Shown piece by piece: positions 9,211-45,973 of a stretch of 64,000 nt of DNA. Each line of letters opens with the position of its first letter. Positions within the stretch are counted from its first letter, which is position 1. Location of the stretch: positions 372,001 through 436,000 of IMG/VR virus record IMGVR_UViG_3300028558_000016; one strand, written 5' to 3'. The notes beneath the pieces are model-generated. The model was not told where the DNA came from and ran no database searches. It saw nothing but the letters and a program-made list of their open reading frames with translations. The position numbers and the translations under genes are program-made.

Positions 9211-9708
9211 ATGGGGAAGATAAAGAAGTTCAAGGAATTCAACGAGAAGGAATCTGAGTATACCGTTTATTCAAATAAGAAAGGTGGAAAATTCTGGGGT
9301 GACCAGGGTGCTGGTGTTCTTCCCATTTGCAGAAAAACAGGAAGAATTCTTGTTGCCATGAGAGGTGAACAGGTAAATGAGCCTCACACGTGGGGAATTT
9401 TTGGAGGAGCGATGGACGAAGGAGAAACTCCAGAAGAATCTGCAAAAAGAGAATTAGTTGAAGAATCAGGATATACTGGAAAATTTGAAATCATTCCAGC
9501 TTTCATATATGTGTCTCTGGATCAAAAGTTCACATACAATAATTTCATAGGGATAGTCGACGAGGAATTCCAACCGGAATATGATTGGGAAACTGAATAT
9601 GCTAAATGGATGACTCTCGATGAATTGCTTAGTGCAAAGCCAAAACATTTCGGCTTAAAGAAGCTCTTGGACAAGAGCATGGATATAATCAAGAAATTTG
9701 CAAAGTAG
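9211..9708 (+). CDS. Nudix hydrolase
   Basis: GGAMDEGETPEESAKRELVEESG Nudix box; ends TAG-TAA. Confidence 0.9.
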   Translation: MGKIKKFKEFNEKESEYTVYSNKKGGKFWGDQGAGVLPICRKTGRILVAMRGEQVNEPHTWGIFGGAMDEGETPEESAKRELVEESGYTGKFEIIPAFIYVSLDQKFTYNNFIGIVDEEFQPEYDWETEYAKWMTLDELLSAKPKHFGLKKLLDKSMDIIKKFAK

Positions 9709-9719
9709 TAAAAACTATG

Positions 9720-10227
9720 AGCCGCCAGAACTTAAGATCGGTGATGAAAGTTTTTGTGGCGTTTCATAGACTTAGGTCATAGACTTGCGAAGAATCCCCT
9801 AAGGGCGTTAGTCTTGCAGAGGATTTCGACTTCCGCTAAGAAGTCCTCAGTCGTGCCAGTGTCAGTATACACTTAAAGCGTTCCATCAATCTCAAGCCTG
9901 ACGGCTCTCATTTTGATTCTTTTTCTTGGTTTGTGTTTGTTGTCGACACAGGTAGACAAACCTCGCTAAAAACCTACACTAATGGGTTCGTGCAGAACCA
10001 CGGAATTTTAATTTATGGCTCATAATGGTAAAAGCCTGATGCTGATCTTCCGCCAACAACTATCTGGTTTTTCTAACTCCAGAAAAATATCAGGTTTAAA
10101 GTCCCTGAGGGTGACTACAGGTTTTTATGCGCAAAGACCTTGTGTGAAAACAACGTCCGTATATCGGTCTACGGCAGACAGGCCACTCTATATGATCCTG
10201 AAGATCAGTCGGTGACGCGACATGGCT
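9720..10227 (-). ncRNA. candidate large structured ncRNA (about 510 nt)
   Basis: GC-richer gap with no credible ORF; long-range CTGATCTTC/GAAGATCAG pair; many hairpins; promoter-like TACTTTAG upstream on the minus strand. Confidence 0.5.
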
Positions 10228-10318
10228 AAAGTAATAATTTTTCTAATTCTGCTATAAAATAAATAAAAAATATTTTTAGTATATTTGAACTATTACCCAT
10301 ATCACTGATATAACTATC

Positions 10319-10726
10319 ATGAAGTTCAGAAGAAGAAGAAAATGGGTCATATTTAAGAAATGGCTTGCGAGCAAGTTTGATCCTGGTGAAACACTATTAA
10401 GTACGGAACAAGAAAAGGCATATAAAATAGCAAAGAAGTTAATCGTTGATGCTGATAGTGTTTTATATGCAGACGTGTCCGGTGAAGCAAGGTACATCAT
10501 CGTCAATGGAGAAAGATTTGTCAGGATGACAAGTGGCAAGATACGAATAATTGACGGCCCATACAAATATGACGTGACGTTTGATCCAAGAAGATTGGAT
10601 GAATTGAGACGCTTGTTTGCAAAAAATCTCGAACACAGGCACGATAGGTTAGAAGCTGAAATAGGAATGAGAGTGGAAAAAAGTTTGGATCATATTTTAA
10701 AAGAAATAGAAAATGATAACAATTGA
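10319..10726 (+). CDS. hypothetical protein
   Basis: ORF track; TATATTTG promoter upstream. Confidence 0.65.
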   Translation: MKFRRRRKWVIFKKWLASKFDPGETLLSTEQEKAYKIAKKLIVDADSVLYADVSGEARYIIVNGERFVRMTSGKIRIIDGPYKYDVTFDPRRLDELRRLFAKNLEHRHDRLEAEIGMRVEKSLDHILKEIENDNN

Positions 10727-11516
10727 TTTAGAAAAGAGCTTGGTCAGAAACAAAAGAAAGTTGTTGACCAACGAAGAAATCATGGTCCTCGATAAAATGG
10801 AAAAAATCGAGAACAACAAGGAGATAGAAGAACTCCGTTCAAAGCTTGGCATCTGGTCAGACAATGCTAAAACAGCAAGCAATGCTAAATCTAAAATTCT
10901 TATTTATAACAAGTATCCAGCTGACAGAATTTATTCTGAGTCTGACATCAGAAGCCTGTGTCTAAAATACGGCCTCAGATTTTTACCGAGCCATTATTTC
11001 AATGGTGAATTGGACACTGAACTTCCTGGAAAAATTAAACAATTTGAACAGAAATACCACCATGGTTGTTCAGGCGTGACAAAATACAATTCATTCATCG
11101 CAGCTCCGGCGGAAAGTTTTAAACTTCAAAAGAGACCTAAAGATCCTTTGTTCTTCGTTGAGGTGGAAAGAGTTGGATACATCTCTGAACAAAACGAGAA
11201 GCATTATTTCTTATTACATAAATGGGGAAATGATATTTCCATAACAAGATGGATCGCGAATCTCCCAATGAGAACCACTGCTTTGGCAAATGGGCTTTTA
11301 TTATCTCTTGGATTTTTGCTTGGAATGTTCACATCAATATTTTATAACAATCAACCGGTTGGTCTTTCTTTGATGTTTGGATTATTGGGAACAGTATTGA
11401 TGTTACTGGTTATCATGCTTGTTGGAATATTCTTAGACATGATAAGTGACGATTCGAGAATGGATATATTCGTCACAGGAAACGATGAAAAGTGGAACAG
11501 CCCATACATAAATTAA
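10713..11516 (+). CDS. membrane protein
   Basis: two C-terminal hydrophobic segments. Confidence 0.65.
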   Translation: MITIDLEKSLVRNKRKLLTNEEIMVLDKMEKIENNKEIEELRSKLGIWSDNAKTASNAKSKILIYNKYPADRIYSESDIRSLCLKYGLRFLPSHYFNGELDTELPGKIKQFEQKYHHGCSGVTKYNSFIAAPAESFKLQKRPKDPLFFVEVERVGYISEQNEKHYFLLHKWGNDISITRWIANLPMRTTALANGLLLSLGFLLGMFTSIFYNNQPVGLSLMFGLLGTVLMLLVIMLVGIFLDMISDDSRMDIFVTGNDEKWNSPYIN

Positions 11517-19398: not shown

Positions 19399-19413
19399 CT
19401 GCTCCCACTTTCT
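19386..19413. terminator. hairpin between convergent genes
   Basis: GGGAGCA-TAAC-TGCTCCC followed by T-rich tail. Confidence 0.5.
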
Positions 19414-19601
19414 TATTTAACTGTAGATGTTGCAACAACTGTAGGAGTTGCAATCACTGAAGCAGCTTCAACTGCTTTACAAGTATCAACACACGCTTTC
19501 GTTGTGTCACAAACTTCATTAACAACTTCAACTTCCGTTTTAGGAGTTCCACATGCAGCAAACATCGTCGTTGCAATAATTAAAAGTACAATCTTTTTCA
19601 T
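19413..19601 (-). CDS. small lipoprotein
   Basis: MKKIVLLIIATTMFAAC lipobox. Confidence 0.7.
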   Translation of the reverse strand: MKKIVLLIIATTMFAACGTPKTEVEVVNEVCDTTKACVDTCKAVEAASVIATPTVVATSTVK

Positions 19602-19716
19602 AGATTTTGTTGGGTTTTTAGTTTAGTTCCATATTAAACCGGGTCACGGTCAGGCTATATATAAATCACTGAGAAGTTAGTTTCAATCGATATATACAGC
19701 ACCACAATCATTTCCA

Positions 19717-19914
19717 TTGAAGCCAAAATTTAAAATCGGACAAACCATTTATTACATGTATCTCAATTGGATATGCAAATCTAAAGTGAAAAATCATTAT
19801 GAAAAAGATGGGAAGATCTTTTATTCTGATGACAGAAATGATGAAATATTAGAAAAATTCGTATTTGATAATAAGCCCGAACTGATTGATTTTCATATAA
19901 ATAGAACAAAATAA
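19717..19914 (+). CDS. hypothetical protein
   Basis: ORF track (KFKIGQ start). Confidence 0.55.
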   Translation: MKPKFKIGQTIYYMYLNWICKSKVKNHYEKDGKIFYSDDRNDEILEKFVFDNKPELIDFHINRTK

Positions 19915-19919
19915 ATAAA

Positions 19920-19960
19920 TAATTTTTCTGGTTTAAAAATAAGTGCCTATATTTGTATTC
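19920..19960 (+). promoter_or_regulatory. conserved operon promoter block
   Basis: TTTTTCTGGTTTAAAAATAAGTGCCTATATTTG. Confidence 0.6.
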
Positions 19961-19978
19961 AAGTTGAAAATCTTTAAG

Positions 19979-20032
19979 GGTTGCATTCAGCATAACAAAT
20001 CATCTACAAAATGAAACCAAAAGCAATCTGAA
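19979..20032 (+). ncRNA. CAGCA-motif structured element, copy A
   Basis: GGTTGC-ATTCAGCATAACAAA...GCAATC-TGAA. Confidence 0.55.
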
Positions 20033-20087
20033 GAATTTCAATGAAACAAAAAAGAAAAAAGATATATAACATAAGATATTAAAAAAA

Positions 20088-20142
20088 GGATGCGTTCAGC
20101 ATAACAAACTTACAATTGAAAAGTAAACCAAGGCATCCTGAA
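20088..20142 (+). ncRNA. CAGCA-motif structured element, copy B
   Basis: GGATGC-GTTCAGCATAACAAA...GCATCC-TGAA. Confidence 0.55.
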
Positions 20143-20155
20143 AAATTTTAAAGAA

Positions 20156-20248
20156 ATGAAAAAAGTAAATAACATAATCCCGCAGTTTCAGTTTGTGGTG
20201 CCGTTTAGCGGTTCCAACGGGCGTGTTATGTACTTTGACGATTTGTAA
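20156..20248 (+). CDS. attenuator leader peptide, Pro/Phe/Val-rich (30 aa)
   Basis: MKKVNNIIPQFQFVVPFSGSNGRVMYFDDL*. Confidence 0.8.
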   Translation: MKKVNNIIPQFQFVVPFSGSNGRVMYFDDL

Positions 20249-20298
20249 AAGAAAACGTTAGACAACAGAAAGCCCGGTGGAAACATCGGGCTTTTTTT
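20218..20298 (+). terminator. attenuator: antiterminator and intrinsic terminator
   Basis: CGGGC(20218-22) can pair GCCCG in the 5' arm of AAAGCCCGGTG-GAAA-CATCGGGCTTT-TTTT. Confidence 0.8.
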
Positions 20299-20311: not shown

Positions 20312-20384
20312 CGGGGTGTAGCGCAGTTGGTAGCGCGCGTGGTTTGGGGCCATGAGGTCGTCGGTTCGAGCCCGGCTACCCCGA
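20312..20384 (+). tRNA. tRNA-Pro(TGG)
   Basis: CGTGG-TTTGGGG-CCATG; CGGGGTG/TACCCCG. Confidence 0.9.
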
Positions 20385-27372: not shown

Positions 27373-27420
27373 TAGGTATATTATTAGTATATTTGTACTG
27401 AAAATATAACTAAACCAACC

Positions 27421-41542: not shown

Positions 41543-41551
41543 TAGAGAAAA

Positions 41552-41631
41552 TAAATTTTTTAGTTTCAGAAATAGTTCCTATATTTGCAGATATAAACAT
41601 TGAAACAATTTTAAAAAGAAAAGGTATATAG
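41552..41631 (+). promoter_or_regulatory. conserved operon promoter block
   Basis: TTTTTTAGTTTCAGAAATAGTTCCTATATTTG...GAAACAA...GGTATATAG. Confidence 0.65.
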
Positions 41632-41638
41632 TTTAGAA

Positions 41639-41745
41639 GATTGCTTACAGCAAAACAAAATGGTTAAAGAATCACCGAAAGGTGGTTTTTTCGGTTCGAT
41701 CCCGAAGCTCTGAGATTACATCAATGAGTTTTAAGGCAATCTGAA
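41639..41745 (+). ncRNA. CAGCA-motif element enclosing a tRNA-like core, copy C
   Basis: GATTGC-TTACAGCAAAACAAA...TGGTTAAAG...GGTTCGATCCC...GCAATC-TGAA. Confidence 0.55.
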
Positions 41746-41766
41746 AGACATTAGAATAACAATACA

Positions 41767-41850
41767 ATGAAGAACAGGAATCACATACACAAGCATCAGA
41801 TATGGCATAGAGATATGTCGGGCTTGGGTGTTACCTGTACTTTGAAGTAA
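41767..41850 (+). CDS. attenuator leader peptide, His/Trp (27 aa)
   Basis: MKNRNHIHKHQIWHRDMSGLGVTCTLK*. Confidence 0.85.
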   Translation: MKNRNHIHKHQIWHRDMSGLGVTCTLK

Positions 41851-41906
41851 GTATTGGTTATTTACGAAAGTAAAACCTCAAGGCCTAAAACCTTGAGGTT
41901 TTTTTT
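41823..41906 (+). terminator. attenuator: antiterminator and intrinsic terminator
   Basis: CTTGGGTGTT can pair AACCTCAAG; terminator AAAACCTCAAGG-CCTAAAA-CCTTGAGGTTTT-TTTT. Confidence 0.82.
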
Positions 41907-45827: not shown

Positions 45828-45973
45828 ATGTCCTTAGCTCAGTGGTTAGAGTATTATGCTGATAAAAGGTTTTAGATCTTGTAATGGAAAAATATCACGG
45901 CTCATAACCGTGGTACCAAAACAAAAATTTAAAATGCACATAAGGGTCGGTGGTTCGAATCCATCAGGACATG
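45828..45973 (+). tRNA. tRNA (GAT) with about 73-nt insert carrying a nested CAT anticodon arm
   Basis: ATGTCCT/AGGACAT; TTATG-CTGATA[insert with CACGG-CTCATAA-CCGTG]A-CATAA. Confidence 0.65.

Follow-up and report, generated by a model that had tools for sequence, protein, structure and literature searches.

Bacterial and phage RNAs longer than about 400 nt with complex conserved folds are very few, namely rRNA, RNase P, tmRNA, group I and II introns, OLE, GOLLD, ROOL and HEARO, and almost every one of them has turned out to be a ribozyme, an RNP core or an unexpected RNA-only assembly. GOLLD (Rfam RF01998) and ROOL (Rfam RF03087) are large RNAs that are often found near tRNAs and in prophages (PMC5737381). 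ROOL is about 580 nt long, has many junctions and pseudoknots but few highly conserved nucleotides, and its function is unknown. A further class carried by huge phages, which also bring their own tRNAs, tmRNA and (in relatives) aminoacyl-tRNA synthetases, would bear on what these phages do to host translation and on what ROOL- and GOLLD-like RNAs are for.

In the present study we examined a 64,000-nt stretch of DNA (hereafter the window), which comprises bases 372001-436000 of a 482,156-bp virus record judged complete (IMGVR_UViG_3300028558_000016). The genome has 36.8% GC and 55 tRNA genes, 25-28 of them in the window. An original prediction made from the sequence alone had proposed that an ORF-free region of about 510 nt at 9720-10227 is a large structured ncRNA of unassigned family. 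Here, we show that the region holds a conserved and heavily folded non-coding element of about 525 nt, which matches no described RNA family and has so far been found only in a small group of very large uncultivated phages. In the absence of transcript data, we consider it probable that the element is the gene of a large non-coding RNA.

RESULTS

The gap is free of genes but unremarkable as a single sequence

The gap at 9709-10318 lies between a NUDIX hydrolase gene (9211-9708, plus strand; Pfam PF00293, E 8e-17) and a gene for a 135-aa protein of unknown function (10319-10726, plus strand). All six frames are closed between the NUDIX stop (9706-9711) and the next start (10319). Because the window carries a tRNA with anticodon CUA (2278-2351; labelled tRNA-Pyl by ARAGORN and scored by Rfam at 71.6 bits as tRNA), which suggests that TAG is read as a residue in part of this phage's genes, as described for other huge phages, we also read TAG as Gln, and the longest stop-to-stop frame was still only 71 aa. 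A 66-aa ORF at 10015-10215 has no family match.

The original prediction that this is the only long non-coding gap outside the tRNA clusters is essentially right. In a crude genome-wide scan for stretches free of tRNAs and of ORFs of at least 75 aa, three gaps of at least 300 nt were found in the window, and the other two (19399-20296 and 41543-41853) abut tRNA clusters; the former is an 898-nt AT-rich stretch (GC 0.32) just upstream of the cluster that starts at 20312. In the same tRNA-rich window, an Rfam tRNA match at 45828-45973 spans 146 nt (48.7 bits, full model) and is not called by ARAGORN, and may be a tRNA gene with an insertion of about 70 nt. Outside the window, a second ORF-free and GC-rich gap (G000:C1:131154-131772 of the same genome, L052; 619 nt, GC 0.43 against 0.37) has no Rfam match and no similarity to the element studied, and is another candidate ncRNA.

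The gap is GC-richer than the genome as predicted, but only modestly (0.41, and up to 0.45 locally, against 0.368). The predicted 9-bp long-range pair 10042-50/10200-08 is exact. On the other hand, the promoter-like boxes, one of which had been noted on the minus strand, were no more frequent than in shuffles (8 found, 6.3 +/- 2.9 expected), and the single-sequence folding energy was unremarkable, with z of -1.6 on the plus strand and -2.2 on the minus strand. On the window alone the case would therefore be weak, and it rests on comparative evidence.

The element is conserved in syntenic relatives without a coding signal

To find relatives, we searched with the 135-aa protein, which gave 11 homologues at 59-83% identity by word search and 15 more by profile search. 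The contigs of these homologues showed the same order in 8 distinct full-length relatives from several independent metagenomes, i.e. NUDIX, then a gap of 530-620 nt, then the gene, and one partial relative and three contigs listed without DNA show the same arrangement. No match was found by blastn and tblastn against GenBank phages. Scans of IMG/VR with the NUDIX protein gave only non-syntenic NUDIX domains, those with the 135-aa protein, its alignment and the protein of a distant relative (L050, see below) gave nothing, and those with two RNA motifs gave only chance hits, most of them inside long open frames. Two scans of genome contigs with the protein found nothing, and a motif scan of metagenomes recovered only the window's own contig and that of one relative (L030), besides chance hits.

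The gaps align over about 525 nt (9709-10236), from just after the NUDIX stop to the end motif GGCUAAAGUA (10224-33), with a mean column identity of 70% and many invariant columns. Identity to the window is 57-81% for the element, much as in the flanking genes (66-81%). However, variable sites are spread evenly over the three phases in the element (0.70/0.68/0.69), whereas the two genes show the usual third-position excess (0.43/0.26/0.85 and 0.51/0.36/0.92). Purifying selection thus acts here without a coding signal. A decayed or recoded protein-coding gene, which the CUA tRNA might otherwise have allowed, is close to refuted by this even spread and by the short frames with TAG read as Gln; stops of all three kinds occur in every frame and indels are not multiples of three. 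The element is single-copy in the genome.

The element folds into two domains joined by a helix

RNAalifold on the 8 sequences predicted 63 pairs, of which 18 have changes on both sides. Due to the fact that the automatic consensus folds differed between settings, we went through the alignment helix by helix and tested the curated helices against shuffled and slid controls. The resulting architecture has two domains and at least 12 helices.

Domain I (9712-9932) is closed by P1 (9712-9718 with 9926-9932) stacked on P2 (9719-9728 with 9898-9907). P2 is 10 bp and is compensated at two positions, and P1 switches between U.G and U-A. The 5' end of the element hence pairs with its middle and not with its 3' end, and the weak 5'/3' end pairing of the original prediction was not confirmed. 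Between the 3' strands of P2 and P1 sits a near-invariant asymmetric internal loop (9908-9919; UCAUUUUGAUUC in the window, core UUUUGAUU), whose U4-GAUU core is invariant in all relatives. Inside domain I, hairpin Hb2 (9790-9815) has an outer stem AAGA/UCUU and an inner stem CCC/GGG, with a 4-nt loop that reads CGAA on plus and UUCG on minus, and the inner stem covaries, for example CCC/GGG and CUU/AAG. The two-part hairpin Hc (9819-9848) has the conserved loop CGCUAA (plus reading), and its inner stem varies in a compensated way (CUUC/GAAG, CUCU/AGAG, CUCC/GGAG, UUCC/GGAA). There are also variable hairpins.

Domain II (9941-10222) is closed by P3 (9941-9945 with 10218-10222), which lies in the invariant palindrome GUCGAC; 37 of 40 cells are Watson-Crick and 2 are wobble, and the flanking pair varies G.U/G-C. 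P4 (9950-53/9972-75) varies AGGU/ACCU, AGGA/UCCU and GGG/CCC, and P5 (9977-79/9990-92) is compensated in the relative L027 (UGC/GCA against CAC/GUG), with a possible overlapping stem at 9985-89/9995-99. The predicted long-range pair is real and extends to 10 bp (P6, 10041-10050 with 10200-10209); it is conserved in relatives, and L027 compensates two positions. Hairpin P7 (10063-10083), with the conserved loop UUUUUCUAA, covaries in its stem (UCUGG/CCAGA, GCUGG/CCAGC, CCGAG/CUCGG), three pairs having changes on both sides. The most conserved core (10090-10116) is nearly invariant and is a probable H-type pseudoknot, with S1 at 10090-94/10104-08 and S2 at 10100-03/10113-16; S1 is GCAGG/CCUGC in L050, and S2 grows from 4 to 6 bp (AAAGUC/GACUUU) in the relative L018 and in L050.

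Moreover, a 6-bp helix, LR1 (9764-9769 with 10013-10018), joins the two domains and crosses P1/P2, so it is a pseudoknot. In the relative L015 both strands are changed (UUCGAA with UUCGGA, instead of CCAUAG with UUAUGG), which gives three double compensatory changes in an otherwise invariant partner, and 46 of 48 cells are canonical.

On 62 curated pairs as aligned by MAFFT, 88.4% of cells are canonical and 18 pairs have changes on both sides, while 1000 column shuffles gave a mean of 5.9 and a maximum of 11, and sliding the partners by 1-3 columns gave 1-6 such pairs and 34-45% pairing. For an independent count, we built a covariance model of the P6 subdomain and realigned the nine members. 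Here 93.9% of cells were paired, against 90.2% in shuffles (0 of 500 reached the observed value), 4 pairs had changes on both sides, against 1.1 in shuffles (2 of 500), the covariation score was 0.125, against 0.074 (1 of 500), and slid controls gave 24-54% pairing. As only 9 distinct sequences plus one distant one were available and the sequences are related, the covariation statistics rest on few events and are support, not proof. The refuting condition set with the original prediction, no conserved structure, does not hold.

Modularity and a probable inverted copy in a distant relative

Peripheral modules can be lost. The relative L016 (identical to L017) lacks about 54 nt of domain I and the P4-P5 module but keeps the rest, and is a natural minimal variant of about 435 nt. 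In contrast, L050/L051 is a relative at 47% protein identity with an 872-nt, GC-richer gap. On the strand opposite to its flanking genes, this gap has an 11-bp helix in the place of P2 with a quite different sequence, directly after it the loop motif ACGUUUUGAUU, an A-run and U-run pairing like P1, and, about 560 nt further on, a 15-nt identity with the core hairpin. With all filters off, nhmmer found just two collinear matches in 30 kb (E 0.08 and 0.38); of 1000 dinucleotide shuffles of that gap, 3 gave a single hit as good and none gave a collinear pair as good. However, the covariance model of the P6 subdomain did not detect L050, so the inverted homologue rests on short matches plus architecture, and we rate it as probable, not certain. 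If it is real, the element is an autonomous unit rather than an appendage of either neighbour. The distant relative also carries a class I (Glu/Gln-type) aminoacyl-tRNA synthetase gene (L050:5633-6435) and several tRNAs within 3 kb of its probable copy of the element.

Flanking sequences and the possibility of a cis-acting region

The end motif is followed by a T-run (10238-42) present in all relatives and then by an A/T-rich box (10266-10289) containing TATATTTG, which is also conserved in all relatives and has a second copy in the window at 27378-27395. We take this box for the likely promoter of the 135-aa gene and not for part of the RNA; it appears to fit the Bacteroidota-type -7 element TAnnTTTG. 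The 135-aa protein has a basic N-terminus, which suggested RNA binding, but its predicted structure (AF2, pLDDT 88) has no PDB match and resembles only uncharacterised phage proteins, several of them from Flavobacterium and Cellulophaga phages. Together with the promoter box, this hints at a Bacteroidota host. In several relatives the NUDIX gene is longer (280-295 aa; L016:1302-2144, L018:3528-4379, L021:2102-2989), and in the L016/L017 and L018/L019 contigs it is fused to a GNAT acetyltransferase domain, whereas in the window it is a plain 165-aa NUDIX. Nothing links NUDIX or the 135-aa protein functionally to the RNA beyond conserved adjacency.

Inside the 3' end of the NUDIX gene, 33 nt from P1, lies a 6-bp hairpin (9663-9678) whose fourth pair is C-G, U-A, G-C or A-U in different relatives, with Lys changed to His or Asn to keep the pair. 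RNA structure therefore seems to be selected within the coding sequence, and the hairpin may be an end or processing structure of the RNA. This hairpin, the start of the element directly after the NUDIX stop with no conserved promoter in between, and its constant place between the same two genes would fit a long structured 3' UTR of the NUDIX mRNA, or a leader or riboswitch of the 135-aa gene. We consider such a cis-acting region unlikely, since the promoter-like box separates the element from the 135-aa gene, a more distant relative (L049) has this gene without the gap, no riboswitch or leader family matches, and 525 nt with two domains and pseudoknots is far beyond known leaders. The apparent inversion in L050 relative to both genes also speaks against it, although the strength of this argument is limited by the weak L050 match.

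Evidence on the transcribed strand is split

With a strand-symmetric rule for helix ends, G.U cells and A.C cells are equally frequent (31 against 34). Switches between Watson-Crick and wobble pairs in P1, LR1 (three columns), P3, P6 and P10 fit the plus strand, as do the conserved T-run after the 3' motif and wobble pairs in the NUDIX-end hairpin in L016 and L030. Three columns of P2 and the end pairs of P4, P5 and Hc, however, fit the minus strand. Moreover, folding energy is lower on minus in 7 of 9 sequences (mean z of -2.1 against -1.5), G exceeds C on minus in 8 of 9 sequences and likewise in L050, and Hb2 reads as a C(UUCG)G tetraloop on minus in 4 of 8 relatives, with another UUCG hairpin in the same sense in L050. 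P1/P2 followed by a U-run, and the compensated hairpin at 9663-9678 followed by a U-rich tail, look like terminators, the latter being flagged on the minus strand. No conserved promoter was found for either strand, and we regard the two strands as about equally likely.

As neither strand shows the wobble excess typical of RNA, and the element contains the invariant palindromes GUCGAC and GUAUAC within a non-coding gap, a structure of single-stranded DNA or a DNA-level site, such as a replication origin or a packaging or recombination site, was also considered. We find this improbable, because the element has helices 150-250 nt apart and crossing helices, which double-stranded DNA cannot form. 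There are no iterons or AT-rich unwinding repeats inside the element, GC skew shows no switch at this position, and peripheral hairpins come and go as in RNA families.

No described RNA family matches

A scan of 9600-10400 against all 4227 Rfam families at E <= 10 returned one irrelevant 18-bit snoRNA hit, and the relatives L018, L021, L027 and L050 gave only tRNAs. Hence no match was found to ROOL, GOLLD, RNase P, tmRNA or introns. Literature searches found no description of such an RNA. A remnant or ORF-less self-splicing intron or other mobile RNA element, which size, pseudoknots, phage setting and the apparent inversion in one lineage might suggest, is very unlikely: no group I or group II intron model matches at E <= 10, NUDIX ends with its own stop and the next gene has its own likely promoter and its own start, so that no gene is interrupted, and the single-copy element sits at the same site in all relatives.

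A catalytic RNA that processes the many tRNA precursors of the phage, as a functional analogue or very divergent form of RNase P RNA, is likewise unlikely. No RNase P RNA is detectable in the genome, and the size, pseudoknots and invariant single-stranded motifs of the element are ribozyme-like. The motifs AAAGUCC and ACAUGGCU-A seem to recall CR-I and CR-V of RNase P, which is only a lead. However, RF00010 found nothing in the whole genome and RF00011 gave one 9-bit hit elsewhere, although control genomes were detected. The candidate P4 pairing of AAAGUC with GGCUAAA is broken without compensation in L018 (GGCU becomes UGCU) and in the relative L021, and hosts supply RNase P.

DISCUSSION

Our data suggest that the gap is a gene for a large, two-domain, pseudoknotted non-coding RNA of about 525 nt, belonging to a family that has not been described and is so far seen only in one lineage of huge phages rich in tRNA genes. 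We hold this reading to be probable, without transcript evidence, and the original prediction of a large structured ncRNA of unassigned family is supported. We infer that the RNA most likely acts in trans as a folded particle, which could be an RNA scaffold or RNP, or a self-assembling 'ornate' RNA of the ROOL/GOLLD kind, and that it is probably linked to the tRNA and translation module of the phage rather than regulating a neighbouring gene in cis; any function is pure inference. It is also possible, though more tentative, that the element founds a new class of large ornate RNAs specific to huge, tRNA-rich phages, either a new ribozyme or an RNA that self-assembles into a higher-order particle, with a conserved core plus lineage-specific expansions from about 435 to about 750 nt, like the module architecture of the great ribozymes.

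Compared with tmRNA (RF00023), a phage-encoded translation-related RNA of several hundred nt with pseudoknots, this locus has no tRNA-like ends and no tag frame, and neither ARAGORN (9000-11000) nor Rfam matches it. The tmRNA of the phage lies elsewhere (G000:C1:223297-223699, L053:498-900, outside the window; 101 bits, E 2e-39), where it was found by Rfam but missed by ARAGORN on the whole genome, which also shows that Rfam models work on the RNAs of this phage. Bacterial RNase P RNA (RF00010, RF00011) is of a similar size class, with a two-domain build, pseudoknots, a setting among tRNA genes and two short motifs that look alike, but the end-to-end P1 is absent here and the P4-like pairing is not supported by covariation.

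In our best reading the element is closest in kind to ROOL and GOLLD. Like GOLLD, it would be a large ornate RNA near tRNA genes, but it is smaller than GOLLD and has a different architecture. With ROOL it shares a similar length (about 580 nt for ROOL, about 525 nt here), many junctions and pseudoknots, and a phage setting near tRNA genes, which lie within 1-7 kb in the window and in L018, L021, L027 and L050. The helix layout differs, however, the element is known only from a narrow lineage of huge phages, and it has long near-invariant stretches, whereas ROOL has few highly conserved nucleotides.
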